From positions 310,001 through 374,000 of IMG/VR virus record IMGVR_UViG_3300018080_008436: 64,000 nucleotides of DNA; one strand, written 5' to 3'. The translations under genes and the position numbers were made by a program. The number at the start of each line of letters is the position of its first letter. The first letter of the stretch is position 1. The notes under the pieces were generated by a model. The model did no database searches, had not been told where the DNA came from, and worked only from the letters and a program-made list of their open reading frames with translations. Below, in pieces: positions 2,447-37,940 of the stretch.

Positions 2447-2473
2447 TGTAATACTCTAAATTTTATTGCAAAA

Positions 2474-2681
2474 CTCCAAGCTCATAGGCAGGATTCTGTT
2501 TAATATTTTCCATCATTTATCTATTGGCATCAACCCGACCATTATAGAGTAGCTCACCCTCTAGGTCTGTTTGAATTGCAACCTCGGTAGTGCAAACGAA
2601 TCTCTTCTCCTACCTTAAGCTAAGTTGTCCTGACCTTCCTCTCATGAGCATTACCTCGTAGAGCGATGGATCGGCTTGAAA
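2474..2681 (-). ncRNA. rnpB: RNase P RNA, minimal (catalytic domain with vestigial specificity domain)
   Basis: GAGGAAGGUCAGGAC (2641-2627) and ACAGAAUCCUGCCU (2499-2486) form P4 with the bulged U; P1 UUUCAAGC/GCUUGGAG, P2 UCCAUC/GAUGGA, P5 CAAC/GUUG, P6 UAGCUUA/UGAGCUA, P7 GGUAG/CUACC, P15-17 with GGU loop, UAGAUAAAUGA motif. Confidence 0.88.
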
Positions 2682-2686
2682 ATGTT

Positions 2687-3118
2687 TTATCCTGGCCAAG
2701 GCCAAGACATAGTTAAGTGTATTGAATACATAAATCCGCCACCATCCTTAACGGCGGAATATATAAAGGGGAAAGGCTTCTTTTTAATGTCTGCGATGGC
2801 TTCCTCAAGATAAGCGATAACCTCTTCCTCAGCCTTATTATCTCCAAGTTCTTTCCGCTTTTCGTGCCAACGAATCTGATCCCTATTTGGAACAATCCGA
2901 ATAAACATGTCAGCAGGAATCCTGTCCTCATTACTACAGAACTCAGTCTTAACCCCAATTTTCTTTTCGTTGGCTTTCTTAATAAAATCTAGGATTTCTG
3001 CTTCAGTCATCTCCATAACTTCAGACATCCCAAAATCTTCTTCTGGAATGCCAAGTGACTCTAGGATATGGACATCCTCTGCAATTGCGTGAAAAACGAC
3101 TTTCATTGATGGCTCCAA
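2687..3118 (-). CDS. hypothetical protein
   Basis: ORF track; real start may be an internal Met. Confidence 0.65.
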   Translation of the reverse strand: MEPSMKVVFHAIAEDVHILESLGIPEEDFGMSEVMEMTEAEILDFIKKANEKKIGVKTEFCSNEDRIPADMFIRIVPNRDQIRWHEKRKELGDNKAEEEVIAYLEEAIADIKKKPFPFIYSAVKDGGGFMYSIHLTMSWPWPG

Positions 3119-3990: not shown

Positions 3991-4082
3991 TGGCGGAAGG
4001 AGAGGGATTTGAACCCTCGTGCCCCTTTCAGGACCAACCGCTTTCCAGGCGGTGACGATTAACCAGACTCCGTCATCCTTCC
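3991..4082 (-). tRNA. tRNA-Ser(GGA)
   Basis: Cloverleaf, loop CU-GGA-AA, long variable arm, G73, encoded CCA. Confidence 0.95.
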
Positions 4083-4088
4083 ATATTT

Positions 4089-4346
4089 TTATTTTTCATC
4101 TTGGGTTTTCGTTTCCCCTACTTTGATCAGATGTCTTGGGTTAACTAAAACAAGATAATTTTTAAGTACACAATATCCATTATCCAACATATACTCAATT
4201 TCATACATGGTGTTTATACTCATACTCCAAATACCTGCACCATGCCAGTCTTGATATTTTTGGGGGCGTTTAACAACATCCCCAATTTTCAAGCCGTTAG
4301 GATTGCAAACATCTGCCAGTTCAAGATCCGTTCTTTTCATCTTCAA
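4089..4346 (-). CDS. hypothetical protein
   Basis: 85 aa ORF in an overlapping gene chain. Confidence 0.6.
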   Translation of the reverse strand: MKMKRTDLELADVCNPNGLKIGDVVKRPQKYQDWHGAGIWSMSINTMYEIEYMLDNGYCVLKNYLVLVNPRHLIKVGETKTQDEK

Positions 4347-4599
4347 GTTCCTTGTTGATGAAATTCTTTAACACTGCATTGAACCCAATAGAGACAAGTT
4401 CTGAAAGCTCGTCCTCTGTTAAATCATGGGTTCTGACCCCCTCAATATTTTCTGATGCTTTTACAGCAACAACAGGAAGTCCACTCTCTTTTATTAAATC
4501 TTTTAGTGCAATAAGTATTAACGTATCGATCTCTCCTTCAGTAAGATCGATCTTAAATGGTTCGCCTGCTTCAAGTTTTTCTGGTTCAAGAATTTTCAT
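4321..4599 (-). CDS. hypothetical protein
   Basis: 92 aa acidic ORF, ATGA overlap. Confidence 0.7.
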   Translation of the reverse strand: MKILEPEKLEAGEPFKIDLTEGEIDTLILIALKDLIKESGLPVVAVKASENIEGVRTHDLTEDELSELVSIGFNAVLKNFINKELEDEKNGS

Positions 4600-4826
4600 C
4601 GTTTAATTACCTTCTCAGGCATTTCATCTCTTTTGTTCACAACCATGTACTTCCCATTGCCCTCAAAAATAACAGAAAGACCGCCATTTATTAGCTTAGC
4701 TGTTTCGCATTTGATCATTTCTGCCCCATCTTTTCTTTTGATCATCTCCCCAACATACTCTTCCTGTACTTTTTGATTGATAAAATCTGTTAGATTCATA
4801 TATCTACCTTTTATTTGGCTCTTCAA
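4596..4826 (-). CDS. hypothetical protein
   Basis: ORF track; start probably the internal MNL. Confidence 0.6.
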   Translation of the reverse strand: MKSQIKGRYMNLTDFINQKVQEEYVGEMIKRKDGAEMIKCETAKLINGGLSVIFEGNGKYMVVNKRDEMPEKVIKR

Positions 4827-5016
4827 TCACCATTATACAGCCAAGATTAGTATCAAAGTAACTAAGTCCATATTCTTCCAGAACTTCTAGGACCAGTTCC
4901 CTCATTTTAAGGGAATTTCCTGTAACAACCTCAAAAGGAGGGTCATAATTAAAAATATGAGAGTCAAGTAAAGACCGAACATCTTGATGCTTAACCCCAT
5001 GTAAATCTAACTTCAT
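4804..5016 (-). CDS. stand-alone Smr-domain protein
   Basis: MKLDLHG...VVTGNS...NLG motifs; ATG at 5016 overlaps the nadD TGA. Confidence 0.7.
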   Translation of the reverse strand: MKLDLHGVKHQDVRSLLDSHIFNYDPPFEVVTGNSLKMRELVLEVLEEYGLSYFDTNLGCIMVIEEPNKR

Positions 5017-5666
5017 TTTCCGTGTAACCAACCCTTCCGATTATGAGTCTCTTTCATTTGAACCTCTTCGGAAGGGACATAAAGACAGTGGTCCTGGATA
5101 TATCGTTGAACTTCTTCGTCCAAATATGGCAAAAAGTCTGATCTGCCATGTTTTTTGAAGTGATCTCTTGCCATAGTAGACGAACATTCGGTAATTTTGT
5201 CTTCTACGTCCAAGAAAAGATGGGGAGGATTCTTATACCATCGATATTTCTTCTTCAATTCGATTCCACTTCTTGTTACAACAACAAATTTGGCAATTTC
5301 CCGTAATTTTTTGAAATTATGCCAGTTAATGAAGTTGTTTACGTTGTCAGCACCAATGATAAAACTGATATCAACATCAAGTTGTGGGTCTTTGAGGAGG
5401 GTTTGGACTAATTCGAAGGTCGAACCACTCAGTTCATGTCTAATTTCGTAATCAAATACATGAAGTTTCGGATTTTTTCTGCAAGCGATAGCGCACATCC
5501 TGAGTCTGTGTAAATTAAGCTCTAAATTCTTACCAAATCGATGTTTATTGCAAGGCAAGAGCCAAACTTCATCAAATTTTCCTTTTTCAAGGACAAATTC
5601 AGCTACTTGTATATGAGCAAGTGTTGGGGGATTGAAAGCCCCGCCAAGAATGGCAATTTTAGTCAT
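5013..5666 (-). CDS. nadD: nicotinate/nicotinamide nucleotide adenylyltransferase
   Basis: ILGGAFNPPTLAH, FIIGADN...W, VVTR, SST.AR motifs; GGAG RBS before ATG 5666. Confidence 0.9.
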   Translation of the reverse strand: MTKIAILGGAFNPPTLAHIQVAEFVLEKGKFDEVWLLPCNKHRFGKNLELNLHRLRMCAIACRKNPKLHVFDYEIRHELSGSTFELVQTLLKDPQLDVDISFIIGADNVNNFINWHNFKKLREIAKFVVVTRSGIELKKKYRWYKNPPHLFLDVEDKITECSSTMARDHFKKHGRSDFLPYLDEEVQRYIQDHCLYVPSEEVQMKETHNRKGWLHGK

Positions 5667-5684
5667 AGTTTTCTCCAATGATTT

Positions 5685-5772
5685 TGGCGGAAGAGGTGGG
5701 ATTCGAACCCACGGATGCTCTCACATCAACGGTTTTCAAGACCGCCGCCTTCGACCTCTCAGCCACTCTTCC
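5685..5772 (-). tRNA. tRNA-Ser(UGA)
   Basis: Cloverleaf, loop CU-UGA-AA, long variable arm, GCCA end. Confidence 0.95.
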
Positions 5773-5778
5773 AAATTT

Positions 5779-5915
5779 TGATGGACAAGACGGGATTCGA
5801 ACCCGCAAATCGAGATGCCTCACCCATTGCTTAGGAGAAAAATAACTCCTGCCCATGGTAGCGACATTACTCTTAAGACCAGAGCCTCAACTTTGCCAAT
5901 TTAAGTTACTTGCCC
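5779..5915 (-). ncRNA. tRNA-like RNA with G3:U70/A73 acceptor and ~60 nt structured insert in the anticodon arm
   Basis: Acceptor GGGCAAG/CUUGUCC-A, D arm ACUU/AAGU, T arm GCGGG-UUCGAAU-CCCGU; ends UCA rather than CCA. Confidence 0.7.
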
Positions 5916-5929
5916 GTCTTGTCAAATTT

Positions 5930-6051
5930 TGGCGGATGAGGTAGGATTCGAACCTACACTGTAGCGGTTTCTGTTTTTTGGTTGCTGAAGAGAACCTTTT
6001 TGTCAAGTTCATTTTTTGGACCGCCGTCTCTGCCAGTTGGACTACTCATCC
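5930..6051 (-). tRNA. tRNA with ~45 nt insertion (possible intron) in the anticodon loop; identity uncertain, possibly Leu(CAG)
   Basis: Acceptor GGAUGAG/CUCAUCC-GCCA, D arm, stem GCGGU/ACCGC enclosing a ~52 nt loop ending CAGAA, intact T arm. Confidence 0.75.
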
Positions 6052-6062
6052 ATATTTATAGT

Positions 6063-6090
6063 AATATAGCCTTAAAATAAGAGATTGCAA
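6063..6090 (-). promoter_or_regulatory. sigma70-type promoter inside the tRNA region
   Basis: TTGCAA-N16-TATATT, 12 nt upstream of the 6051 tRNA 5' end. Confidence 0.6.
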
Positions 6091-6109
6091 GTTAAATATA
6101 AAGAAAAAT

Positions 6110-6196
6110 TGGAGGAAGATTGAGGGTTCGAACCCCATCCCTTTCGGAACCATCTGTTTTCGAAACAGTGACAGGAGCCATCCTGCATAATCTTCC
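6110..6196 (-). tRNA. tRNA-Ser(CGA), non-canonical 8/4 fold
   Basis: 8-bp acceptor GGAAGAUU/AAUCUUCC, 4-bp T stem, 6-bp D stem with 4-nt loop, loop UU-CGA-AA, U73-CCA. Confidence 0.85.
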
Positions 6197-6204
6197 ATAG
6201 AAAT

Positions 6205-6294
6205 TGGCGGAAGGGGAGGGATTCGAACCCTCGGACCCCTTGCGGGGTCGCAGGTTTAGCAAACCTGTACTTTCGGCCACTCAGTCACCCTTCC
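6205..6294 (-). tRNA. tRNA-Ser(GCU)
   Basis: Cloverleaf, loop UU-GCU-AA, long variable arm, GCCA. Confidence 0.95.
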
Positions 6295-6304
6295 ATAGGG
6301 GGCA

Positions 6305-7042
6305 TTATACCCCAAAAATCAATAATTCAAAATCGCCATTCTCATGTTCTACGATTGCAGAGCAATGCTCTACCCAATCTCCGCAGTTATAGTAGTCAAT
6401 CCCATCAATTTTTTTGATTATAGGAGAATGAACATGACCACATATAACTCCATCGCAATGATTCTCTTTGGCATACTCTGAAAGGAGACCTTCAAACTCT
6501 CCAACATAAGTAACAGCTTTTTTAAAATTTTCCCTGGCAAACTTTGATAAACGAACTCTTTTCACTCCGAACATCCTTAAACATCTTGCCAGGAACTCAT
6601 TCATTGAAACAAGAGTGTCATAACCCCAACTTCCAACCTTTGAGATCATGACTCCAATTCTTGAAAAAAGAATGAAATCAAACTTATCTCCATGAGTGAT
6701 GTAATACTTCTTTCCAAAACTGTGATAATATGTTTCTTTACAAATTTCCAGGTTCGGATAATGAAAACTGTCCAAAAGTTCCATCATACCATGATCATGA
6801 TTTCCTAAAACATAATGGACGTTACAGTGTTTTGACATTTTTAGAAGTCTTCTAATGACTTCTGTTTGGTTTTTATCCCATTTAGTTCTGTCTAATCTCC
6901 AAAGATCAAAGATATCTCCGATAAGATATAAATTGTCACATTCAGTCTCTTTTAGGAATTTAAGTAGTTCTTTAGATTTGCATCCAACACTGGCCATGTG
7001 GCAGTCTGAGATGAATACTGCTCGGTACTTAGTTTTACTCAT
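6305..7042 (-). CDS. calcineurin-like metallophosphoesterase, UDP-2,3-diacylglucosamine hydrolase (LpxH-like) family
   Basis: ISDCH, GDIFD, GNHD, HGD, GHVH, NCGDW motifs; AGGAGG RBS before ATG 7042. Confidence 0.85.
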   Translation of the reverse strand: MSKTKYRAVFISDCHMASVGCKSKELLKFLKETECDNLYLIGDIFDLWRLDRTKWDKNQTEVIRRLLKMSKHCNVHYVLGNHDHGMMELLDSFHYPNLEICKETYYHSFGKKYYITHGDKFDFILFSRIGVMISKVGSWGYDTLVSMNEFLARCLRMFGVKRVRLSKFARENFKKAVTYVGEFEGLLSEYAKENHCDGVICGHVHSPIIKKIDGIDYYNCGDWVEHCSAIVEHENGDFELLIFGV

Positions 7043-7130
7043 ATTTTTCCTCCTATAAGTAGTAAGGAATAATACTGAGAAAACAGGATAAAACCTACTC
7101 AATAATGAGTTGTTAACCAAGTATTAATAT

Positions 7131-7221
7131 TGGCAGAGGGAGTGGGACTCGAACCCACAAACCGCATTTCTACAGCTTACATGATTTCAAATCAAGCTCT
7201 TCATCCAGCCAGATTCCCTCC
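7131..7221 (-). tRNA. tRNA-Ser(UGA) with degenerate D arm
   Basis: Acceptor GGAGGGA/UCCCUCU-GCCA, loop UU-UGA-AA, long variable arm. Confidence 0.8.
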
Positions 7222-7227
7222 ATTGAT

Positions 7228-7313
7228 TGGTAGCTAGGAGGGGGGTCGAACCCCTACGCCTTTCGGCATTAGTTTCTAAGACTAACATGTCTACCAAGTT
7301 CCATCACCTAGCC
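7228..7313 (-). tRNA. tRNA-Leu(UAG)
   Basis: Loop CU-UAG-AA, variable arm GCC-GAAA-GGC, ACCA end. Confidence 0.95.
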
Positions 7314-7318
7314 ATCTT

Positions 7319-7395
7319 TGGTAGCCTCGCTGGGAGTCGAACCCAGAACATACAGTTTCTAAGACTGCCCTCTCTGCCAATTGGAGTACGAGACC
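7319..7395 (-). tRNA. tRNA-Leu(UAG), short variable loop
   Basis: 77 nt cloverleaf, loop CU-UAG-AA, ACCA end. Confidence 0.9.
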
Positions 7396-7403
7396 ATTAA
7401 ATT

Positions 7404-7489
7404 TGGCGGAAGGTAGGAGATTCGAACTCCTATGCCCGTGAGGACGACAGTTTAGCAAACTGCTGGCTTACCATTCGCCACAACCTTCC
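7404..7489 (-). tRNA. tRNA-Ser(GCU)
   Basis: Loop UU-GCU-AA, long variable arm, GCCA. Confidence 0.92.
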
Positions 7490-7491
7490 AT

Positions 7492-7578
7492 TGGTAGCCA
7501 GGGAGGGCCTCGAACCCTCACTCCCTTTCGGGAACTGGATTTTGAATCCAGCGCGTCTGCCAATTTCACCACCTGGCC
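7492..7578 (-). tRNA. tRNA-Leu(CAA)
   Basis: Loop UU-CAA-AA, long variable arm, ACCA. Confidence 0.95.
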
Positions 7579-7589
7579 AATAAATTTAA

Positions 7590-7657
7590 TGGAGCTAATG
7601 AGATTCGAACTCATCCCCCTGCCTCTATGGGCAGTTCGGCTACCGTCTAGTAACCCC
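7590..7657 (-). ncRNA. 68-nt tRNA-like RNA with G3:U70/A73 acceptor and 6-nt anticodon-position loop
   Basis: GGGGUUA/UAGCUCC-A acceptor, CUGCC-CAUAGA-GGCAG, AUGAG-UUCGAAU-CUCAU; no CCA. Confidence 0.65.
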
Positions 7658-7689
7658 AATTGGTTGCGTATAAACATATAAACAATATT

Positions 7690-7777
7690 TGGTAGTCTCG
7701 GGGAGATTCGAACTCCCACCTCCTTCGCGGAGACAACGACCTCAACGTTGCGTGTCTGCCAGTTCCACCACGAGACC
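7690..7777 (-). tRNA. tRNA-Leu(GAG)
   Basis: Loop UU-GAG-GU, long variable arm, ACCA. Confidence 0.95.
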
Positions 7778-7824
7778 ATTATAAGTGGCCATAACTGACG
7801 AATTAACCCCAGTTTTGGCCGTTT

Positions 7825-7844
7825 ATTCGTAATATATTACGAAT
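7825..7844. repeat. 20-bp perfect palindrome in a tRNA spacer
   Basis: ATTCGTAATATATTACGAAT. Confidence 0.8.
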
Positions 7845-7847
7845 TAT

Positions 7848-7923
7848 TGGTAGCCCTGGTCGGATTCGAACCGACACTTTACGGATTTTAAGTCCGCTCC
7901 CTCTGCCGTTGGAGTACAGGGCC
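7848..7923 (-). tRNA. tRNA-Leu(UAA), short variable loop
   Basis: 76 nt, loop CU-UAA-AA, ACCA. Confidence 0.9.
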
Positions 7924-7928
7924 ATTTT

Positions 7929-7990
7929 TAACTGTTTTTCTCGTTATAGTGGAAAATATAACTGTTTTTCCAGTTTTGTAACTGTTTTTC
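7929..7990. repeat. three 12-bp direct repeats
   Basis: TAACTGTTTTTC at 7929, 7959, 7979. Confidence 0.85.
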
Positions 7991-7998
7991 CAGTAAAA

Positions 7999-8090
7999 TG
8001 GTGAGCAGGGAGGGATTCGAACCCCCAATGTTTACCCAAAGGGGACAGATTTACAGTCTGCCGCAACACCACCATCGTTGCCGCCTACCC
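7999..8090 (-). tRNA. tRNA-Tyr(GUA), extended D stem
   Basis: Loop CU-GUA-AA, G1:C72, long variable region, ACCA. Confidence 0.9.
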
Positions 8091-8094
8091 ATTT

Positions 8095-8182
8095 TGGTCC
8101 TGGTGGTAGGTAACGATCCTACTTGATGCGCAATGATGATAGTTTTACAGACTACCCCGTCTCCTTAACGGTCTACACCAGG
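8095..8182 (-). tRNA. tRNA-Tyr(GUA) with C1:G72 and atypical T loop
   Basis: CCUGGUG/CACCAGG-ACCA, loop CU-GUA-AA, T loop AUCGUUA. Confidence 0.85.
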
Positions 8183-8184
8183 AT

Positions 8185-8206
8185 AAAAAGGTGACTTAAG
8201 TCACCT
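8185..8206 (-). terminator. terminator-like or processing hairpin inside the array
   Basis: AGGTGAC-TTAA-GTCACCT followed by TTTT. Confidence 0.45.
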
Positions 8207-8293
8207 AATGCCTCTGGGTCAGACTTACCAATACCGTCATATTGGGTCCGATAGCCCAGTAAGGACTTTAAGCGTCTGGTTTTCCCCAGACCC

Positions 8294-8381
8294 TGGAGCG
8301 CGGTGAGGGATTCGAACCCTCGCGGACATAAGTCCCATCAGTTTTGCAGACTGTGCCATTAAACCACTCTGGCAACCGCGC
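8294..8381 (-). tRNA. tRNA-Cys(GCA) with long variable arm
   Basis: Loop CU-GCA-AA, U73-CCA, variable hairpin GGAC-UUAU-GUCC. Confidence 0.88.
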
Positions 8382-8387
8382 ATATTA

Positions 8388-8458
8388 AGCACGATGTCGG
8401 AATCGAACCGACTTCTGCGGGTTTGCAATCCGCCGCCTCACCATCTGGCTCATCGTGC
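8388..8458 (-). tRNA. tRNA-Cys(GCA), no encoded CCA
   Basis: GCACGAU/AUCGUGC-U, loop UU-GCA-AA. Confidence 0.88.
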
Positions 8459-29379: not shown

Positions 29380-30027
29380 GCAAAAATACGAAAATTCAAC
29401 AAAACCCATTTCCTCAGGTACATTTTCATATCTAACAACAAACCCATTTTCGAGCAATTCATAGACATAAAGTCTTGGAAAATCGAATGGGCCTGGATAC
29501 TCGTTTGAAGTTGTGCTACTGTCACTACTTAAAGATTGGCTTGAACTACTGGATGAGTCTTTTGAGCTAGAACTGGACGTACTGTCTGAACTAGGAGTAT
29601 CTTCGCTACTGGTGCTGGAAGAATCTAATGAGCTTGAACTAGAGGAATACTCTTGTGAGCTTGAACTAGGAGATCCTAAGCTACTTGAAGAAGATTCGCT
29701 TGCCTCTGTTGAGCTACTACTGCTTGATGAGTCTTTTGAGCTTGAAGAACTGGATTCAGTAGAAAGTGAAATTGAAGTAAGACTGGATTCAGAAGTTGGG
29801 CTTGATGAGCTTGATGAAGATATTCCCCCTATTGATAAACTTGATTCACTAGAAGAACTATATTCAATAGCTGGATTATAAATAGGTATAGAGGCCCATG
29901 TGATAATGGCACTCGTTATAGGATAACCAGTTATGATAGTAATATATCCATCTCCTGAACCAGCGTAAGCCTTCTTTCCTGTCAGGGGATAGTTATCAGA
30001 TCTTCTTAAATCGTATCGTCTTATCAT
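29374..30027 (-). CDS. Ser-rich protein
   Basis: Long poly-Ser tract between short globular ends. Confidence 0.8.
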   Translation of the reverse strand: MIRRYDLRRSDNYPLTGKKAYAGSGDGYITIITGYPITSAIITWASIPIYNPAIEYSSSSESSLSIGGISSSSSSSPTSESSLTSISLSTESSSSSSKDSSSSSSSTEASESSSSSLGSPSSSSQEYSSSSSSLDSSSTSSEDTPSSDSTSSSSSKDSSSSSSQSLSSDSSTTSNEYPGPFDFPRLYVYELLENGFVVRYENVPEEMGFVEFSYFCL

Positions 30028-33000
30028 TCTGGTAGCCTTTTGCTTATTGGAACGTTTATAATAGTTCCATCACTTGACCTCGGAATCCTTTTGGAAATAT
30101 TATACATTACTCCAATATGATGGATAACTGCGACCTCATCAGTGAAATTTGTTACTCTTGTTGCGACTCTGAATGATGACGCAAAGAACAAATCCATAAA
30201 TATAGTTGTCGATGGGTCCTGTGGAGCCAAGAATGTAATCGTCCCTTCAATATTATTGGCCGCGTATTCTGAAGAATCAATCAAAGTCCCTTGAGTCTCA
30301 TCCAGTCCAAGTCTATAAACATTCAGTGTAAAGTTTGCATTCCATCGACCATTAACAGCCGTATAAGTTTTGAAATCTTCTGTTTGTAATAATTCATTAA
30401 ACCTTGTGGGCAATATCGTATGTTGATCTGGAATGATGTTATAGTACTCTTCTGGTCTCAAGGATTCACTTTGAGTCATAAGGTATTCTACAGTAGAGTT
30501 CTCTGGGACATCTGCTTCGCTAGTTATATGAATTGAAGAAATGTATTCGTCATCGTCCAAGTTCACTGAGATTGGTTTGAAGAAAATAACGAATTCTCTT
30601 GGGTTGTAATAATCAACTTCTACTCCACCGTTAATTACTGGGGTTTGGAAATCAGAGTTTCCAACGAGTTTGATCTCATATTGAATATATTTCTGCAAAG
30701 CATCAATTGACTTGTCATGTTCATAAGGAATTGAATAGTCAATGAAGTCAGTCCAGTCAGAATATGTAATCCCATCTACACTAGTTCTTATTCTGTAGGT
30801 TACTTCTGCTCCTGTAGGAACGGTAACTCCCGCTATTACAGTAGTGTCTGGGATATTGGGATTCTCAAAGACAATCGTCCCAGTAAGAGTTGTTGTGTTA
30901 ATTTGTAAATTATTCCCTGATGCGATCTCATTACAAATACTATTTATTTGGGCTGAAGTGCTGTTATCTAAGTAGAATACAGACGATCCTCCCTCCTCTC
31001 CATATTTCTCAAGCAAGATAGAGTCAGATGCATGGGGTTGCCCTAATTGAATCGGAATTATCTGAACTTCACCCTCTCCATCAACAAAGTTGACAGTTTG
31101 TACAGCTTGATTTAAAGAATTCTCGGATGTATTCTCGTCGCCATCTGTGACAATGATTACAAATTTCTTATAGTCTTTGTAATCTTCGTTATTTGTTTGA
31201 TATTGGACCAATTGCTCTGCGGCTCTTTTTACTGCATCATGCAATTGACTTGCACCAAAGAAACCAAATGAATCGATTGCAGAGGCCAAGTAGATATCAT
31301 CACTTGTTAACTCTGGGACTCTATGTCTAATGGATGGATACCATTGTTGAATACTGGCCACATTGATGATGAATTGTCTTTCGGAAAGATAACCATCAGA
31401 CGTTGCAGAAACTCTGGCCTTAATATGCATGTAATCTCTTTTTACTCCTGCTCCCATTACCAAGAATCCAGGATCAGTTCCTTCTTCGTCTTCTGGTGGT
31501 TTGTATGGAAGTAGTTCAACAGTAATACGAGATCCATCAGTTACAATCTCTTCTGGTACGACAATTACATTCCCGATATCGTCAACGTACTGATACTCAG
31601 GGAACTTCGCATAAACACGAATATCAAAACCTCTTTCAGTTTCTTCGATATCGGTAGCAGTATAGAATGTTGCGGACGTATCTTCACTTCCAGCAGGGCC
31701 AGCAACTCCTGATTGAGATGAAGCTTCTTCTTCGTCCTCATAATCTAATATAAAGATTGGTTCACCATTATTAAGGTCGTTCCCCAATTCTATCTTAGTA
31801 GCAAGTCGTCTTGCCAATTCAGTTCCAGCAGGCACTTCGAGCGTAGCAAACATCATTCTGTTGCCTTCTGGATTCACAGGTTCATTTTCATATGGTTGCG
31901 AATTTGTGGGATCGTATCTAACTGTTCCATTTACAACAAAGTCTGTATCAATATTCTTTGTTGGAAGAATGTTCGTCATGGCAACACATCTGACATTATG
32001 AGAGTGACTTAACTGCTCATCTGATTCATAGCTGGTAAACGTATGAGTATGATTGCCAATTGAGCCGAACAAATTAATCGTACTTGTCGTAGTGCCATTC
32101 CCATTGATATCTAAGCTAATTACATGAGTGTGACTGCTTACTACTTCACCTCCGCTATCTTCGTCATATACGTCTGAACGAATTAAACCAGACTGAACAG
32201 AATAGTCAGACAAAGAAATGTCTTGGTTGGGACCGACAATCAAACAACCATCAATCAGGTTTCTTGTATCCTTCATCTGAGGTAACTGTCCACCAGAAGC
32301 ATTACTCTCTTCGCAAATTCCACTTTCAAATGTCACTTTTGGCAATGGATACTCTATTACTGACTCAAAATCGGTTCCCTCATTAATTGTGAGTTGATTG
32401 AGAATTGGTTGGCCTTTCCAAGTCAATTCAGCATAGATTCTTGCAGTAGTAACTCCATCTCTGACAAAATTAGTCTCATATTTTAGCTCAATACCAAGGG
32501 GTTCCACATATTGTTGTAGTGGTTTTGGAATTCTAATGCCACCACCAGGAGTGGGGAGTGGCCTTCCATTGGCGATTTCTCCTCTTCTGTATCCCCCTTC
32601 TTCCTTTCTGTAAGAGGTATATGCTTCAACCTGACTTAACCAAGGCTCTCTAAAGATCTCACGTTCTCCAAGAGGTTGCTGATGTCCAATATTTTTGTTT
32701 TTAGGAATGGCTGTTAACTCAAGCCTATCTGTTTGCCAAGTGGACCTTCTAGGGTTTGAATTGAATGTTGTTAAAGTTCTTGGTAAATCATTCGGTTGTC
32801 CCAAACCTCTAAGCCTTTTTACACCATCCTCTCCAACGAAAATGTCAGTTGGGTTGAAGTCATCTTGTAAATCCACTACAATTTTTGCGTTTGGATTACT
32901 TTCTCCATCAGCGTAGATAGGTGTCAGAGCGTCTTTTGCATAAAAAATGAATGAATCATCCTCATCTCCAAAGTTCTGACCAGTCAAGCTAACGATCCTT

Positions 33001-36000
33001 CTAACTTTTCTTACATATCCAGATGGATGGAAAACTTCAATATCTACATTAACATCCACAATTGGAGGGCAAAGTTCTGCCGCCGCCGCACCCGCTTCCC
33101 TTGGTTCAACTGGCTCTATTGGCCCAATGAATACCCCTCCAGCCCAACCATTATCAGTAACACTTGAGCTTGGCTCAACATTAAATTGTTTGGCTGATCT
33201 AAAAGAGAAGTTTACTTGGACGTTATCTTCAACAACTTCACTAGCGTCAAGATATTCCACGCCAGTCCCTATCTCATAAACTTCATTTTCAGCAGGGACC
33301 AAAACGCCTGGATTTACAGAAGTTATAGTAACTGGATTCGCTATGAAGAACATATCTGCTAATATTTGCTCATGTTGATCTCTGTCCCCAAACGATACAG
33401 AAGCTTCGATAAATAACAAGGAAACAATATCACTCGTTGGTATTGTTATAGAGGCTTTGCCATTAACTATTTCTAAAGAGAATTGATACTGCTCAAACTG
33501 TTTGGCATATGTCCATTCTGCTGGATCTTGATAGAAAAGTCCGCTTTCTTCCTCAGTATCTTGTTGAACAGATCCACCAACAAGTTCAATGTATTGATTA
33601 ATGATGTCATTTGCGTTAGTAGATCTGAGTCCAGTTCCAGAACTTGCACTTGGTGCGCTATCCGTCTCATTAACAGATTCAAGAACTTCTTCGAACGGAT
33701 TGTTTTGAACTATTTCTCTCCATTGATCGATAGCTGTTTTGGGTGTTTCCACAGGCTCCCCATTTTCATCAACAGCCACATTTTCCAATGGTCTTATATT
33801 AGCAAATTGTTGAGTTGTTGGATATGAAGAATCTTTATAAACAACATTTGATGCTGTTGCATCCAAATCAATCACTCTATTTGTATACAGAGTTATATTA
33901 ATGAATTGATCGTTAGCTAAAACAAACTCATCAGCCACAATATAATTAAGAGTAATTGTACTGCCATCAGAAGCATGATATCCTCTAACATACCTTTTCT
34001 CATATCGTGGAAAACAATCTAAGCTATCTTCATCTTTTGGAGCGGCTAGATAATATTGGACCCGATCTGATTCAACATAAGTACTGTCAATAACAATAGG
34101 GGAAATAAAAGAAACTTCAAATGGATCTAGATACAATCTAGCAAGAGTCCTCCCAGTTTCACCCATAAAATCGGCATATGCGAAAATCTCATAATCTTTC
34201 GAGAAGAATAAAGGATTTTCTATGCCAGGGATATTCAGCCCTTCAAAAGTTTTCTCCTCATATTCAGTGGCAAAACTCTGCATAGATGACGTAGCCAAAC
34301 CATTAGAGGTATATATTGGAGTTTCGATTACATAATCGACATCTTCTTCTGTGGCATCAGTTTCTTCAGCAGTTGGTAATTCTGTGGCCGTTTCTTGATC
34401 CCCATCATTTTGCTCTAATTGAGCTACAATATCCGTTTCAGGAGAGTATCTGAGTAATCGACTTAAATCTTCTTCTTTGTCTTTTACTGTTTCCAATATA
34501 TCTTCAACAATAGGAAGTACCCTTGCACAAACGTTACCATCAACAGTTGGCATATCAAGAGTTTGCCTCTGAGTAAATTTTTCTGCAAGATTCAAATCTT
34601 CATAAGGAGTTGATGGTGGAACTCTGTCGATATCATATGGTTTTAATAATGATGGATCAACATCTTTGTCATTAACAATTGGAGTCACATCAACGCTAAG
34701 TATCTCTGTCGCAAGAATATTATCTGTTGGAGTTAACTTCTCATCTGACGATTCGTTAAGTCTTATGGTTGTTCCCAATTCAGCAGAAACATCAAACAAA
34801 AGTGGATCGACAATATCAATGTATGGCCCAAGATTTGGATCAGTTCCAATCTCATCAATTTTGGTTGTTTGGATGTTACCTGATTTATCTAGAATATCAA
34901 TAATACTTTCTCTGAAATACCCCTCAGTAGATTGTACATAAATTCTTTTTTGGCCAGCAAACGATGGGTATGTTACAAAGGCTGATTCTATTTTGTCTTT
35001 TGCAAAAATGTCTGGCTCTTTATCAACTAACAAATTGACTTCTGTTCCGTCAGGGAACGGAGTTCCATCTTTCTCAAAGAAACTCATTGGAAGAAGGGCT
35101 GTCTGCCCAAAGAAGAAGATGTTATAACTCACCCATTCACTAAATGCTTCGAAATCCCACTCTAAATAGTAACCATCTGAATTCTGCAAATAAAAGACGA
35201 CATCTCTTGAGACCTTAGTATCTCTAACAAGGATGTTTGCGGTTGATCCGTTAATGTTTGTTATTTTGTTATAAGAACTGTCTTGAACAATACTGCCAGC
35301 TAAACTATTATTTGTGACAGCGAGGCGCACACCAGGATCGAAGGTTATTGTATTACTATCAATCTCTGTGATTGTATGGCCAATATTAGCGGCATCCCCT
35401 TGTAAGATATCTATTACATCTCCAACTTCAAAATCAGAAGCGTCTTCAACTGTTACAGTTGTGTCTCCAACATACAAAATGCTAGTAATATTGCTTTGCG
35501 TTATTCCTGCATTTGTTAGTAGCTTTCTGGAGATAAGATTTGTAGATGCAACGATATCTATGGACTCTTCATTATTTGGGGCATTATTCCCAAGAGTAAT
35601 TGAAGGAGATTCACTGCCAGGATAAAATAACTGCCAATTAGTAAGATTTACATCACTAATAACATTGAAGTCAACTTTGAAATCTCCAATATTGTATGTA
35701 TGGTTATTTTCAAGAGTCTTAAATCCATAAGCAATCATGGGATCTTCAACAGAAACAGCAGTAACTGATGAGAAATCTATTGTCGCATCACCAGTTCCAG
35801 AAACCAGATTCAAAGTCCCACTATCAATTGGACTAGTGTTACCATATGTAATTAAAGAAATCTGATCACTTTTTAGCTTATGTTGAACCGTAAACTCAGC
35901 ACCATTATTCTCATAAACAGCGTCAACATCAGCCTGAGAACCCGAAACATCAAAGATGTAAGTTGTTCTACTTGGGTTATTCAGGTCTAGGTTAATCGTT

Positions 36001-37940
36001 GCGAATGTCCCAAGTCCTGCTGTAATAGTGGATACATCAACATCAGAACCCCCGAAGGTGAACATATCAAACTTTATGTCAGACGGATAGTAGGTTTTAA
36101 ATCTATTTACTAAGCACTCAACGATGTTTTGTCGGTTGTTGTATCTGTCCATCATCCCCATACTTCCAGAACTATCTACAACAAATGAGAGTATTGCATC
36201 AGAGTACTCAATTTCACCATCAACAATGTCATCTTCAATGGTTATCGGGTCTGTGGCAGGAGGTGTTGTTATAGTACTGTTTCCTGGATCGAAAGGGTCA
36301 AAGTTACCAACAACTCTTAAAGCAAAAACGGAATTGTAAAGGTCTTCCCAAGTAGTCTCATCTTTACTTGTCCATGCAAAAGTGTCTGAATCAGCATTTT
36401 TCTCATCATATGCCCATAATACAAAATTATCTTCATCTCCATTGTGGCGCAATGTGATGGAAAGATATCCATTACTAGGAGTTGTTTCATCCATTAAATC
36501 GAAATCGAACGCATACCAATCGTCTTTAACAATTGTTGAGGCATGAAGTGAGGCCAAATGGAGTTCGCTTTTAGGAGTCCCATCATCATAACAGTCAGAT
36601 ATGGACATCCTTATCCAATAATTTGATGTTCCTCTTGCCCTGTACAAGAATACATAAACCTTACCAATACTGTATTCCGAATCATAGACTTTGAATGTTT
36701 GTGCAAGTCTATTTCTTATGTTTGGGTTGGCCGCAGAAGACAAACCTAATAGCAATGGTTTTGTTTGGTTCCAAAAGAGACCCGAACTAGAAGAGCTTGA
36801 GGAAACATTTGCTTCACTTTCACTACTGGTACTGGAAGAATCAATACTTGAACTACTAGAGGTTGAATTACTTGTTGGACTGGATGAAGAAGAGTTTGAC
36901 TGTGAACTTTCCGATTGAGAACTATGCCCAAGGCTTGAAGAAGATGAGCTTGAATCAAGAGAACTTGAACTAGAAGAGCTACTTGTTGTAACTGTGCTGG
37001 ATGAGTAACCACCCGAATCAGAAGAGCTTGAATCAAGAGAACTTGAACTACTGCTAGAACTTGAGCTAAATTGGTTACAAGATAGGGCTAAGGTATTCGG
37101 AAATGGCAATAGGGTTCCATCCCAGTCAACTGTACCAGATAATCCACTATTGTTTTGTTCAATAAGAGTTATTGTTCCTGCGCCAGTCCTTTGACCGACA
37201 GCTATTAAGTTGATTAAGCCAACCTCCCTATAAACTCTGACCTGTTGAATTGCTCCTTGGACAAACAAACCAACATACATATTGCAATTGGTAGTGTTTC
37301 CATCTCCCATCCCTGAAAAAGTCCAGTTTGTGAAGTAAGCACAATTGCCCCCTTCGCAGAATGGACTTGTACAACATTGGGAGCTACTTGAGCTTGGAGA
37401 TTGAGTCGATTGACTGCTTGTACTTGAAGAATCAATAGAGCTAGACGAACTAGAGGTGCTTCTGTCGATACAATATATTATGCCTGAATAAGAGAAGTCA
37501 AGTGGAGTCCCATCCCAATTTACTTGTCCAGTTATCCCGCTATTATCTCTTTCTTCAAGATCTATATCTGAGGCTACCAATGAAGTAACTTGCCCCAAAG
37601 CTATGATATTAAAATATGTTGGGTCTTGGTATAGTTCAACCTGCTGAGTGTTAGTTGCTGGGAAGAACACCGTTCTTACATAAATAATTTCATAATCAAG
37701 ACTTACCCCAATAAGATTCCACCCAGTTAGATGAGCACAAGCAGTTCCTTCGCATTCTGGGTATTGACAGTATCCCGAACTACTAGAGCTTGAGGAAGAG
37801 TCTATACTCGAAGATGAGCTACTAGAAGTAGAAGAAGAATCTATACTCGAAGATGAGCTACTAGAAGTAGAAGAAGAATCTATGCTCGAACTCGAACTTG
37901 AACTTTCGCTATATTGAAAACTTGAACTTGAACTTGACAT
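30024..37940 (-). CDS. 2638-aa putative virion structural protein with poly-Ser linkers and split vWA domain
   Basis: FVVDSSGSM and distant FVIIVTDGDEN; HxH motifs; acidic beta-rich sequence. Confidence 0.7.
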   Translation of the reverse strand: MSSSSSSFQYSESSSSSSSIDSSSTSSSSSSSIDSSSTSSSSSSSIDSSSSSSSSGYCQYPECEGTACAHLTGWNLIGVSLDYEIIYVRTVFFPATNTQQVELYQDPTYFNIIALGQVTSLVASDIDLEERDNSGITGQVNWDGTPLDFSYSGIIYCIDRSTSSSSSSIDSSSTSSQSTQSPSSSSSQCCTSPFCEGGNCAYFTNWTFSGMGDGNTTNCNMYVGLFVQGAIQQVRVYREVGLINLIAVGQRTGAGTITLIEQNNSGLSGTVDWDGTLLPFPNTLALSCNQFSSSSSSSSSSLDSSSSDSGGYSSSTVTTSSSSSSSSLDSSSSSSSLGHSSQSESSQSNSSSSSPTSNSTSSSSSIDSSSTSSESEANVSSSSSSSGLFWNQTKPLLLGLSSAANPNIRNRLAQTFKVYDSEYSIGKVYVFLYRARGTSNYWIRMSISDCYDDGTPKSELHLASLHASTIVKDDWYAFDFDLMDETTPSNGYLSITLRHNGDEDNFVLWAYDEKNADSDTFAWTSKDETTWEDLYNSVFALRVVGNFDPFDPGNSTITTPPATDPITIEDDIVDGEIEYSDAILSFVVDSSGSMGMMDRYNNRQNIVECLVNRFKTYYPSDIKFDMFTFGGSDVDVSTITAGLGTFATINLDLNNPSRTTYIFDVSGSQADVDAVYENNGAEFTVQHKLKSDQISLITYGNTSPIDSGTLNLVSGTGDATIDFSSVTAVSVEDPMIAYGFKTLENNHTYNIGDFKVDFNVISDVNLTNWQLFYPGSESPSITLGNNAPNNEESIDIVASTNLISRKLLTNAGITQSNITSILYVGDTTVTVEDASDFEVGDVIDILQGDAANIGHTITEIDSNTITFDPGVRLAVTNNSLAGSIVQDSSYNKITNINGSTANILVRDTKVSRDVVFYLQNSDGYYLEWDFEAFSEWVSYNIFFFGQTALLPMSFFEKDGTPFPDGTEVNLLVDKEPDIFAKDKIESAFVTYPSFAGQKRIYVQSTEGYFRESIIDILDKSGNIQTTKIDEIGTDPNLGPYIDIVDPLLFDVSAELGTTIRLNESSDEKLTPTDNILATEILSVDVTPIVNDKDVDPSLLKPYDIDRVPPSTPYEDLNLAEKFTQRQTLDMPTVDGNVCARVLPIVEDILETVKDKEEDLSRLLRYSPETDIVAQLEQNDGDQETATELPTAEETDATEEDVDYVIETPIYTSNGLATSSMQSFATEYEEKTFEGLNIPGIENPLFFSKDYEIFAYADFMGETGRTLARLYLDPFEVSFISPIVIDSTYVESDRVQYYLAAPKDEDSLDCFPRYEKRYVRGYHASDGSTITLNYIVADEFVLANDQFINITLYTNRVIDLDATASNVVYKDSSYPTTQQFANIRPLENVAVDENGEPVETPKTAIDQWREIVQNNPFEEVLESVNETDSAPSASSGTGLRSTNANDIINQYIELVGGSVQQDTEEESGLFYQDPAEWTYAKQFEQYQFSLEIVNGKASITIPTSDIVSLLFIEASVSFGDRDQHEQILADMFFIANPVTITSVNPGVLVPAENEVYEIGTGVEYLDASEVVEDNVQVNFSFRSAKQFNVEPSSSVTDNGWAGGVFIGPIEPVEPREAGAAAAELCPPIVDVNVDIEVFHPSGYVRKVRRIVSLTGQNFGDEDDSFIFYAKDALTPIYADGESNPNAKIVVDLQDDFNPTDIFVGEDGVKRLRGLGQPNDLPRTLTTFNSNPRRSTWQTDRLELTAIPKNKNIGHQQPLGEREIFREPWLSQVEAYTSYRKEEGGYRRGEIANGRPLPTPGGGIRIPKPLQQYVEPLGIELKYETNFVRDGVTTARIYAELTWKGQPILNQLTINEGTDFESVIEYPLPKVTFESGICEESNASGGQLPQMKDTRNLIDGCLIVGPNQDISLSDYSVQSGLIRSDVYDEDSGGEVVSSHTHVISLDINGNGTTTSTINLFGSIGNHTHTFTSYESDEQLSHSHNVRCVAMTNILPTKNIDTDFVVNGTVRYDPTNSQPYENEPVNPEGNRMMFATLEVPAGTELARRLATKIELGNDLNNGEPIFILDYEDEEEASSQSGVAGPAGSEDTSATFYTATDIEETERGFDIRVYAKFPEYQYVDDIGNVIVVPEEIVTDGSRITVELLPYKPPEDEEGTDPGFLVMGAGVKRDYMHIKARVSATSDGYLSERQFIINVASIQQWYPSIRHRVPELTSDDIYLASAIDSFGFFGASQLHDAVKRAAEQLVQYQTNNEDYKDYKKFVIIVTDGDENTSENSLNQAVQTVNFVDGEGEVQIIPIQLGQPHASDSILLEKYGEEGGSSVFYLDNSTSAQINSICNEIASGNNLQINTTTLTGTIVFENPNIPDTTVIAGVTVPTGAEVTYRIRTSVDGITYSDWTDFIDYSIPYEHDKSIDALQKYIQYEIKLVGNSDFQTPVINGGVEVDYYNPREFVIFFKPISVNLDDDEYISSIHITSEADVPENSTVEYLMTQSESLRPEEYYNIIPDQHTILPTRFNELLQTEDFKTYTAVNGRWNANFTLNVYRLGLDETQGTLIDSSEYAANNIEGTITFLAPQDPSTTIFMDLFFASSFRVATRVTNFTDEVAVIHHIGVMYNISKRIPRSSDGTIINVPISKRLPE

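Follow-up and report, generated by a model that had tools for sequence, protein, structure and literature searches.

What is the 208-nt core of an RNase P RNA doing in an intergenic gap of a viral record, and could such an RNA still be an enzyme with so little left of the domain that recognizes tRNA? RNase P belongs to the small group of universal ribozymes, and its two-domain design is treated as nearly invariant in bacteria: a catalytic domain (C-domain) is joined to an S-domain (P8-P14, with CR-II and CR-III) that binds the elbow formed by the T-loop and D-loop of tRNA. To our knowledge, no natural exception is usually cited besides archaeal type T. The RNA considered here lies near one end of the window, by which we mean the whole 64,000-nt stretch of DNA that was analysed. 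We hold with high confidence that it is a phage-borne RNase P RNA that has kept its C-domain and lost nearly all of its S-domain, its catalytic activity being inferred. Our main reading, to which we assign a probability of about 0.75, is that this catalytic-domain-only RNA would trim the 5' leaders of pre-tRNAs, probably together with the RnpA protein of the host. Catalysis, partner and substrates are all inferences in this reading, and there are no transcript, cleavage or complementation data.

The RNA occupies its intergenic gap on the minus strand and reads from position 2681 to position 2474 of the window. The motifs quoted in an earlier account, made without database searches (the sequence-only reading), are the reverse complement of the plus strand, which places the RNA gene on the minus strand, as are all the features given below. 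An upstream ORF (2687-3106, 139 aa from an ATG at 3106) has its stop codon 5 nt before the RNA, and the ATG of a downstream ORF (2123-2446, 107 aa) follows 27 nt past it; neither flanking ORF has a known domain in PHROGs or Pfam. Motif counts for a promoter or terminator of the RNA's own were at chance level in the sequence around it.

Identification rests in the first place on covariance models. An E-value scan of positions 2300-2900 gave a match to RF00010 (RNaseP_bact_a) at 2469-2682(-), with 48.9 bits and an E-value of 4.5e-14, and the alignment is global, running end to end over model positions 1-367 with the S-domain and P18 cleanly deleted. At Rfam gathering thresholds, no RNase P match was found anywhere in the window: the score falls below the 100-bit cut-off of RF00010 because about 140 S-domain positions and P18 are absent, and standard annotation misses the RNA because of that score. 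Among the models of the RNase P clan it is bacterial type A that scores best, not the archaeal models. The model of the family described below (R1, with the window RNA as one of its 10 seed sequences) matches exactly 2474-2681 over model positions 1-193, with 179.1 bits and an E-value of 5e-49. The sequence-only reading had claimed a 208-nt RNase P RNA at 2474-2681, and this held, R1 giving the same coordinates; the search with bacterial and archaeal RNase P models that it proposed as a check did find a match for the C-domain, the best being RF00010. The minimum free energy fold of the single sequence is not more stable than shuffles (z = -0.91) and does not recover the structure. Folds of this kind are unable to form the pseudoknots.

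Helix for helix, the C-domain is like that of bacterial type A RNase P RNA (rnpB, RF00010), with P1-P5, P15-P17, the P4 and P6 pseudoknots, CR-I, CR-IV and CR-V, the GCAA of J5/15 and the GGU of L15 all present. P1, helix 1 of the family, pairs UUCAAGC (2674-2680) with GCUUGGA (2475-2481) and shows changes on both sides in 9 of 9 pairs. P2, helix 2, pairs UCCAUC (2665-2670) with GAUGGA (2509-2514); all 6 of its pairs have compensatory changes, and 99.1% of its alignment cells are paired. The P3 hairpin (2641-2663; helix 3, placed by the alignments) is 23 nt long in the window RNA, as against about 10 nt in most relatives, where the loop is often GNRA or UNCG. J3/4 and the 5' strand of P4 lie at 2628-2642, where GAGGAA (CR-I) is followed by AGG-U-CAGGA, aligned to the Rfam consensus GAGGAAAGUCCGG. 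The 3' strand, UCCUGCCU, lies with the ACAGAA of J2/4 (CR-V) at 2486-2501, an assignment supported by the Rfam alignment and by conservation. Together the two strands form the P4 pseudoknot, with its bulged U at 2633 and with CR-I and CR-V on its flanks.

The remaining elements surround this core. P5 (helix 4) is CAAC/GUUG in the window RNA as against CUCC/GGAG in the consensus, the CAAC of 2624-2627 pairing with a GUUG that lies with the GCAA of J5/15 at 2576-2582. The GCAA, at the position equivalent to E. coli A248, is kept in 51-54 of 54 relatives, and its positions were not used in collecting the sequences. P6 is an unusually long pseudoknot of 7 bp between UAGCUUA in J5/7 (2616-2622) and UGAGCUA in the loop of P17 (2550-2556). 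The P15-P16-P17 arm, including the L15 internal loop, spans 2529-2575 and aligns to P15-P17 of RF00010; its helices (9-11) covary across the family. On the 3' side of L15, GGGUU (2532-2536) contains a GGU that is conserved in 53 of 54 relatives. In bacterial RNase P the GGU of L15 pairs with the 3'-RCCA of tRNA. J15/2 (CR-IV), GCCAAUAGAUAAAUG at 2514-2528, is the site where P18 would be, and A160, G161, A166 and U167 of CR-IV are invariant. The P6/P16/P17 arm is what distinguishes type A from type B, and the arm specific to type A is present here (P1-P3, P5, P15-P17 and the P6 pseudoknot), every helix covarying.

What sets the window RNA apart from bacterial type A is the loss of P8-P14, whose CR-II and CR-III form the T-loop binding site, and of P18, leaving 208 nt as against roughly 350-400 nt. 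In the RF00010 alignment, the approximately 140 model positions of the S-domain come down to 36 nt and the 23 positions of P18 to a single nucleotide, with P8-P14 replaced by P7 and a 3-bp hairpin. The remnant (2586-2614; helices 5-8) consists of P7, GGUAG/CUACC, closed round 19 nt: GA, a 3-bp hairpin with a GAGA loop, and GUUUGCA. This layout is common to 51 of 54 relatives, most of which enclose 18-20 nt. A kink-turn or T-loop in the stub, which remains no more than a possibility, was dropped as a candidate, the 3' loop GYUYGYA being too variable and not fitting the kink-turn consensus. Likewise rejected as a partial S-domain was a 108-nt insert in the stub of one relative (L225), which does not align to the S-domain of RF00010.

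These results settle most of the structural claims of the sequence-only reading. P4 with its bulged U, P6, the changed P5, the GGU of L15, P7 round 19 nt and the absence of P18 were all as it had described them. Two small corrections are needed. The interior of P7 is indeed about 19 nt long but holds a conserved 3-bp hairpin and is not unstructured, and the absence of P19, which it had also listed, says nothing, because type A RNase P RNAs do not have this helix.

Could such a shortened match be a chance resemblance, or the debris of a host gene? A search of the region (blastn) and of 20 kb around it (megablast) against GenBank phages found no relative, the sole match being a 59-nt tRNA, and the flanking proteins had relatives in IMG/VR only within the same phage; relatives were therefore sought by way of RNA motifs. 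Two independent motif scans and the covariance model yielded at least about 78 distinct homologues of 183-295 nt (most of them 183-218 nt). They are carried by contigs from IMG/VR and from metagenomes, the longest of 527 kb, and by the published 735-kb huge phage LR756501.1. The first set of 54 members came from a CR-I/CR-V pattern scan, and 24 more, the second set, from a scan anchored on other motifs. Both were gathered with exact-motif patterns, and the counts are lower bounds. In the first set the search pattern itself accounts in part for the fact that GAGGAA..GUC and ACAGAA never vary, a bias only partly removed by the second set, which was gathered without CR-I. The 68 non-seed sequences score 92-196 bits on R1. 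The full-length match of the window RNA to this model comprises the type A C-domain, the P7 stub with its GA and GYUYGYA flanks, and the lack of P18.

Median identity within the family is 64%, with divergence to 47-64%, and the structure is maintained across this range. Before any model fitting, 31 of 44 pairs were compensatory in an alignment of 10 sequences (MAFFT and RNAalifold). In the model-fitted alignment 96.8% of cells are paired and 34 of 39 nested pairs show compensatory changes; the score is 0.829, whereas shuffles reach 0.20 and slid controls 0.06-0.11. The pseudoknots, which are not included in the covariance model, covary too. All 8 pairs of P4 are kept with compensatory changes in the first set of 54 and in the second set, as is the bulged U; one pair is GC in 30 sequences and AU in 24, another AU in 31, GC in 17 and CG in 6, without mismatches, and a P4 pair fixed by the first search pattern changes to CG or UG in the second set. 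For P6, one pair is UA in 25 sequences and CG in 17, and another is UA in 33, AU in 7 and CG in 5. Covariation across homologues, which had been proposed as a check, is strong, both pseudoknots included.

A chance match is excluded by the E-value and by some 78 homologues with compensatory base changes. The second possibility is that the RNA is a functionless, decaying fragment of a host rnpB gene acquired by the phage. The Rfam score below the gathering cut-off and the large missing parts would fit this idea, but exact deletions of the same layout recur in about 78 sequences at 47-64% identity, with 96.8% of pairs kept by compensatory changes, which drift would not produce. We regard decay as all but ruled out.

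A different objection accepts the element as real but denies that a phage encodes it: the contigs would be plasmids, other mobile elements or pieces of small cellular genomes misfiled as viral. In favor of this view, no capsid, portal or terminase match was found in the window, and two family members (L037 and L045) lie in contigs binned into bacterial MAGs, the first of them without nearby tRNAs and carrying a CHAT-domain gene. Against it, IMG/VR contigs of 476 and 296 kb match the window, which is unidirectional and encodes proteins of phage families: phrog_4871 (1.9e-207), a DnaB-type helicase and phrog_14336. A family member is also found in LR756501.1, an unannotated GenBank record of 735,411 bp that we take to be the largest complete, manually curated genome of the 2020 huge-phage paper. 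Finally, the pattern gave 54 hits in 185,579 species genomes, of which just 2 are family members, as against at least 34 IMG/VR contigs. A non-phage origin thus appears very improbable.

If the RNA is phage-encoded, its surroundings offer the best indication of its substrates. Bacterial type A rnpB is a single essential chromosomal gene, whereas the window RNA is carried by a phage near a tRNA array. This array (3991-8458), the likely source of substrates, holds 14 tRNA genes predicted by ARAGORN (Ser, Leu, Tyr and Cys) and 2 tRNA-like genes with inserts; the RNA itself lies outside it, 1,309 nt from the nearest same-strand tRNA, which is upstream. Across the family loci there are 646 same-strand tRNA genes as against 5 on the opposite strand. 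Same-strand tRNAs occur at 62 of 79 loci, and for 31 of the 79 copies a tRNA gene is no more than 20 nt away; some relatives are only 0-10 nt from tRNAs, often inside arrays. The sequence-only reading had suggested that the RNA matures the many non-canonical tRNAs of this phage, a reason that finds no specific support: the arrays of relatives hold 20-34 tRNAs for nearly all amino acids, mostly of ordinary length, and therefore the RNA goes with large tRNA arrays in general. CCA is encoded by 13 of the 14 tRNA genes of the window, consistent with use of L15. A link between encoded CCA and the GGU of L15 was considered and dropped, since GGU persists both where every tRNA gene of a phage encodes CCA and where none does.

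The mechanism that we propose is inferred throughout. The RNA would be made within a long minus-strand transcript; in the relatives that lie 0-10 nt from tRNAs, it may be freed by the same cuts that mature the neighboring tRNAs, so that its 3' end would be the leader of the next tRNA. It is predicted to fold into the usual RNase P active site and to hold pre-tRNA by three features, namely the acceptor stem, the residue that precedes the cut and the 3'-CCA, leaving the distance to the T-loop elbow unmeasured, with cleavage at +1. In the cell it would borrow the RnpA of the host. The phage may gain additional capacity, or capacity independent of the host, for maturing the dozens of tRNAs that it expresses.

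Other activities can be imagined for the same RNA. It might be an active ribozyme of the RNase P type whose main substrates are not ordinary pre-tRNAs but polycistronic mRNAs, tRNA-like elements or host RNAs, or one that acts in cis for its own release. The window RNA does lie between two protein genes with spacers of only 5 and 27 nt, and it lacks its own terminator; without the S-domain, substrate choice is relaxed, C-domain RNAs cutting simple hairpins, and the window has tRNA-like genes with large inserts. That said, the strongest signal from context is that of standard tRNA arrays, with 646 tRNAs on the same strand and a tRNA directly beside 31 of the 79 copies, and the CCA-binding L15 is conserved, so we consider other main substrates unlikely. 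Alternatively, the RNA might be a decoy or regulator: by sequestering host RnpA, or pre-tRNAs, it would divert tRNA maturation in the host or bring it to a halt, without catalysis in vivo. It has kept the domain with the RnpA-binding surfaces and lost the S-domain that makes the natural enzyme efficient, and no phage protein partner has been found, all of which would suit a decoy. Such a decoy would need the protein-binding surfaces only, though, and at 64% median identity the bulged U of P4, the adenosines of J5/15, the GGU of L15 and CR-IV and CR-V are conserved as well; a position inside the phage's own tRNA arrays also suits processing better than inhibition. This explanation too strikes us as improbable, and maturation of pre-tRNAs remains the preferred reading.

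Which protein would assist in that maturation is a matter of inference. A Pfam scan of 33 ORFs of 75-300 aa in the 64-kb window, and only there, found no Ribonuclease_P domain, in keeping with the earlier remark that no RnpA was recognizable in this stretch. No RnpA was found near family members when E. coli RnpA was compared by tblastn with all the fetched loci. The sole credible match in those loci is on a 315-kb metagenome contig (L155) that does not carry a family member and that may be cellular, from a candidate-phylum bacterium. A weak match beside a reduced RNA outside the family (L114) is spurious, being antisense to a 607-aa ORF. In a tblastn search of GenBank phage records with E. 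coli RnpA, none was found in the 735-kb phage LR756501.1, and the other matches look like bacterial contamination. When the 1,306 ORFs of 54 loci were clustered all against all in search of a dedicated cofactor, no neighboring protein proved to be shared beyond one close sub-clade. In solved bacterial holoenzymes, the RNA surfaces known to contact RnpA all lie within the retained domain. The partner is assumed, then, from the retained RnpA surfaces and the failure to find a phage rnpA, and on that basis we favor host RnpA as the likely candidate.

There is laboratory precedent for an RNA of this kind. The E. coli C-domain alone cleaves substrates and is stimulated by the C5 protein (18 as against 2161 for the full-length RNA); such constructs (Eco CP RPR) are active alone at high Mg2+ and with C5 at 10 mM Mg2+ (PMC5839562). 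[quoted passage not shown] The parts list of the engineered S-domain deletions of M1 RNA is the same as that of the phage RNA, but those are laboratory constructs, whereas the phage family is natural and conserved, with a P6 lengthened to 7 bp and a conserved P7 stub.

Archaea supply the natural parallel. Type T RNase P RNA works with an S-domain cut to a hairpin past P7, in a molecule of about 200 nt with a normal C-domain (PMC13462272). In type T (Thermoproteaceae such as Pyrobaculum and Caldivirga; RF02357), as in the window RNA, the S-domain is a single stem past P7, a likeness of architecture only. Type T is archaeal, works with Pop5, Rpp30, Rpp29 and L7Ae and is the only RNase P of its cell, whereas the window RNA is of bacterial type A descent; its stub is shorter than that of type T, and no T-loop motif was identified in it. 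In the Rfam clan scan the window RNA did not meet the criterion for an archaeal-type C-domain, and a reduced RNA that is of archaeal type (L055) was cleanly separated. The comparison with type T drawn in the sequence-only reading stands as an architectural analogy and no more, the best model being bacterial type A. The two reduced forms are convergent, their reduced state not having been inherited in common.

Nor is the family alone among bacterial-type RNAs. Four other reduced type A RNase P RNAs of 191-224 nt (L161, L114, L018 and L014) were found on phage or metagenome contigs, with the S-domain cut to 4-18 nt in three of them. Two of them come from different IMG/VR viral contigs: L018 is embedded in a tRNA array, and L014 lies downstream of one, with about 44 nt to its nearest same-strand tRNA. 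L014 retains part of P7-P10 and lacks P15-P17. L161 and L114 are on metagenome contigs without a same-strand tRNA nearby and keep P18. All four score 107-160 bits on Rfam, above the cut-off, but only 42-58 bits on R1, and they probably represent separate reductions outside the family of the window.

With these included, a bolder reading is that large phages encode working RNase P ribozymes of their own, and we lean towards it by a narrow margin. Viruses would thereby gain their first RNase P, no natural RNase P RNA of bacterial type would be smaller, and the S-domain and P18 would be shown to be dispensable in vivo. The RNAs would be released by tRNA-end processing, and the phages' own tRNAs matured with host RnpA or with no protein, whatever the fate of the host rnpB RNA. 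Repeated selection in phages for an enzyme consisting of the C-domain alone would also be indicated, by at least three or four separate reductions: the window family, the L161/L114 type, L018 and L014. No prior report of a phage-encoded RNase P RNA was found in the literature searched. If the reading is true, a viral branch is added to RNase P, and tRNA 5' maturation joins the translation-related functions of huge phages. How the cleavage site is chosen without a T-loop ruler could be studied, in structure and mechanism, on a minimal ribozyme of about 190-210 nt that occurs in nature, and an unannotated intergenic element in published huge-phage genomes would be explained.

Reduced RNase P RNAs are also known from organelles. 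Those of yeast mitochondria (the RPM1 type) and of some plastids are shrunken and lie next to tRNA genes in small genomes. These organellar RNAs have also lost much of the periphery of the C-domain and need dedicated proteins; the phage RNA, unlike them, keeps a complete bacterial C-domain.

The long open reading frames (ORFs) of the window all lie on the minus strand, including two adjacent giants at 30024-37940 and 37943-45484 (2,638 and 2,513 aa) in which no Pfam domain was found beyond a faint Reg_prop repeat. The motifs quoted for the minimal RNase P RNA by the sequence-only reading are the reverse complement of the plus strand, and therefore this RNA reads from 2681 to 2474, also on the minus strand. 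It fills the gap between an upstream ORF (2687-3106, minus), whose stop codon falls 5 nt before the RNA, and a downstream ORF (2123-2446, minus), whose ATG lies 27 nt past it. A terminator-like hairpin of 10 bp followed by a T-rich run is found at 2735-2758 (minus), within the 3' end of the upstream ORF and separated from the RNA downstream by about 55 nt; this ORF may have its true stop elsewhere, or the hairpin may be read through.

With the curated Rfam thresholds, scanning the entire window gave matches to 12 tRNAs only and none to RNase P. A permissive scan of 2300-2900 produced a match to bacterial class A RNase P (RF00010) at 2469-2682 on the minus strand (48.9 bits, E = 4.5e-14). The alignment covers model positions 1-367; the blocks P7-P14 (about 140 positions) are reduced to 36 nt and P18 (23 positions) to a single nucleotide, and outside these regions the RNA aligns throughout. 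What keeps it short of the curated cut-off of 100 bits is the deletion of one third of the model rather than any poor match in the remainder. Single-sequence minimum free energy folding did not recover the RNase P structure, and the fold was not unusually stable (z = -0.91). Since a double pseudoknot is expected to defeat such folding, the result says little for or against.

Numbered from window position 2681, the RNA forms P1 (2-8 with 201-207), P2 (12-17 with 168-173) and P3 (19-41, longer than in its relatives), followed by GAGGAA in J3/4, which is CR-I. P4 pairs 46-54 with 189-196 and carries a bulged U49, P5 pairs 55-58 with 100-103, and the 7-bp P6 joins J5/7 to the P17 loop (60-66 with 126-132). 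P7 (68-72 with 92-96) encloses only 19 nt, namely GA, a 3-bp hairpin with a GAGA loop, and GUUUGCA. J5/15 is GCAA; P15, P16 and P17 occupy 107-153, with GGGUU on the 3' side of L15; J15/2, AUAGAUAAAUG, constitutes CR-IV, and J2/4, ACAGAA, is CR-V. The sequence-only reading had described a ribozyme of about 208 nt without most of the specificity (S-) domain, and its statements on individual elements all held against the RF00010 alignment and this map.

Searches of GenBank phage sequences with the window found no relative, and flanking-protein searches of IMG/VR returned only the same phage, on contigs of 476 kb and 296 kb. Relatives of the RNA were collected with a pattern of two P4-flanking core motifs 105-135 nt apart, a spacing that excludes RNase P RNAs of normal size. 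This pattern yielded 16 stretches in IMG/VR, mostly visible homologues, 54 in 185,579 species-representative genomes, and at least 120 in metagenomes. A covariance model, R1, built from 10 sequences (193 positions, 39 pairs), assigned 92-196 bits to 54 different sequences (the first set); the window received 179 bits, with boundaries at exactly 2474-2681. Since the pattern fixes parts of CR-I and CR-V in advance, a second scan was anchored solely on the P17 loop, CR-IV and ACAG. It added 24 members missed by the first (the second set; 100-159 bits), from IMG/VR contigs of up to 527 kb. BLAST with a relative located a further member in the GenBank phage record LR756501.1 (735,411 bp, without annotation), near 181.3 kb. 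The record agrees in length with the 735-kb genome of the 2020 huge-phage study, which we take it to be; the paper from that study nowhere mentions RNase P. Given the exact motif patterns and the one truncated scan, both the size of the family and the variability of its core are underestimated.

The first-set RNAs range from 183 to 218 nt (median 196), with identities of 47-99% (median 64%). In the second set, inserts of 68-108 nt in the P7 stub bring some members to 245-295 nt (contig loci L225:10744-11038, L214:2310-2604, L218:1285-1559 and others). The one insert tested, that of L225, did not align to the canonical S-domain, and these inserts are probably lineage-specific expansions of unknown role.

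It could be argued that the carriers are not really phages. This is unlikely in light of their IMG/VR membership, phage-family proteins in the window, the copy carried by the 735-kb phage record, and the near-absence of the family from cellular genomes, where R1 found just two members, both on contigs of metagenome-assembled genomes (MAGs). One is a 1.5-kb contig carrying 13 tRNAs (L045). The other (L037:5910-6124, minus) lies on a 197-kb contig binned as Gemmataceae, adjoins a CHAT-domain protein and has no tRNAs within 8 kb; it may represent a prophage, a phage binned wrongly or a copy in the chromosome.

A plain MAFFT alignment examined with RNAalifold, before any model fitting, gave 44 pairs, of which 31 have changed in a compensatory way. 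In the 54-sequence alignment standard pairs fill 96.8% of cells (63.8% in shuffles), both sides have changed in 34 of 39 pairs, and the covariation score is 0.829; shuffles score 0.20, and shifting the partners by 1-3 columns lowers it to 0.06-0.11. This alignment was fitted to R1, which inflates the covariation figures. The P4 and P6 pseudoknots were not included in the model and are nevertheless borne out. Variable P4 pairs in the first set show no mismatches (GC 30 and AU 24 at one; AU 31, GC 17 and CG 6 at another), and P6 pairs also vary (UA 25 and CG 17; UA 33, AU 7 and CG 5). In the second set a P4 pair frozen as G-C by the first pattern becomes C-G or U-G, with the partner changed to match, and the bulged U is retained throughout; six mis-parsed rows were inspected by eye for this reading. 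Positions not used for collection are conserved as well: GCAA of J5/15 in 51-54 of 54, GGU of L15 in 53 of 54, and the CR-IV positions and the GGAG and AC of the stub. The window RNA is homologous to the type A catalytic domain and has been kept intact by selection, and the covariation all but excludes a dead fragment.

The family is tied to phage tRNA arrays. The loci of the 79 copies hold 646 same-strand tRNA genes and 5 on the opposite strand; same-strand tRNAs occur in 62 of these loci, and for 31 copies the nearest tRNA gene is no more than 20 nt away. One copy begins 1 nt after tRNA-Cys and ends 4 nt before tRNA-Leu (L013), another overlaps tRNA-Phe by 2 nt and touches tRNA-Lys (L017), and a third is 9 and 8 nt from two tRNA-Thr genes (L005). 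From sequence alone, the 3' end of such flush copies would in effect be the 5' leader of the next tRNA. The window RNA is placed more loosely: 1,309 nt separate it from the same-strand array upstream (3991-8458), where 13 of the 14 tRNAs encode CCA. No promoter or terminator flanks it above chance, so it is probably cut from a longer transcript. A ribozyme with other substrates remains possible, especially for the window copy embedded in mRNA, but association with tRNAs dominates across the family.

The window RNA descends from bacterial type A RNase P RNA and is inferred to act in the same way. It differs from that class in failing the gathering score and in lacking the S-domain and P18; its likeness to type T RNase P RNA is one of architecture only. 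The same scans turned up, on phage and metagenome contigs, other reduced type A RNase P RNAs of 191-224 nt with different deletions (L161:933-1156, L114:4263-4477, L018:482-672 and L014:10596-10802). These score 107-160 bits, above the Rfam cut-off, yet poorly on R1, so automated annotation may already call some short phage RNAs RNase P. P18 is retained in L161 and L114; the L018 RNA lies within a tRNA array, and that of L014, about 44 nt past the last tRNA of its array, has part of P7-P10 and lacks P15-P17. An archaeal-type RNase P RNA of 187 nt (L055:496-682, minus; RF00373, 111 bits), without P15-P16 and much of the S-domain, lies on a contig of 18.9 kb from the MAG of an uncultured archaeon. 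In the literature searched no description of a phage-encoded RNase P RNA came to light, an absence of evidence only, as subscription journals were mostly outside its scope.

In the mechanism we consider likely (roughly 0.75), the minimal RNA would cleave 5' leaders of pre-tRNAs, although there is no evidence of activity or expression. It would read the acceptor stem, the -1 residue and CCA instead of using the T-loop ruler, would probably partner with host RnpA, and would itself be released by flanking tRNA-processing cuts. Experiments provide a direct precedent: by itself the C-domain of the E. coli RNA shows activity, which C5 protein stimulates, and once the S-domain is gone P18 becomes dispensable and a P6-type pairing important (PMC5839562). 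The phage family, having lost both S-domain and P18 and having a long, covarying P6, matches this pattern. Type T archaeal RNase P functions in cells with an S-domain the size of a hairpin (PMC13462272). No conserved protein was found beside the RNA across the family. In the window, 64 kb of a 476-kb genome, 33 ORFs of 75-300 aa contain no RnpA domain, and E. coli RnpA as tBLASTn query gave no credible hit in the phage loci retrieved or in the 735-kb phage. That the RNA is instead a decoy for RnpA is unlikely, as its catalytic and substrate-docking elements are conserved. The suggestion of the sequence-only reading that it might mature non-canonical tRNAs is not needed: the arrays found with relatives comprise 20-34 tRNAs for almost every amino acid, most of them ordinary in length.

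In the tRNA array of the window (3991-8458, minus) all genes are for Ser, Leu, Tyr or Cys, and long and short versions are often paired: Leu(tag) of 86 and 77 nt, Cys(gca) of 88 and 71 nt, Tyr of 92 and 88 nt, and a Leu(taa) of 76 nt without a long variable arm. Short Leu tRNAs of 74-76 nt are also present in two relatives (L016 and L019). Two tRNA-like genes uncalled by ARAGORN, at 5933-6051 and 5782-5915 (minus; Rfam tRNA 36.8 and 34.6 bits), have about 44-60 extra nucleotides within the anticodon loop and might be intron-bearing tRNAs or tRNA-derived elements. The 3' CCA is encoded by 144 of 442 tRNA genes in the 54 first-set loci, mostly all-or-none per phage: it is present in nearly all or hardly any of the tRNA genes at most loci, and a few loci are intermediate. 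In L017 a tmRNA gene (2543-2928, minus) shares the array with the minimal RNA (1943-2134), and an array near another family member contains a tRNA with an amber-reading CTA anticodon (L117:571-644, minus), a possible hint of stop-codon reassignment or suppression in that phage.
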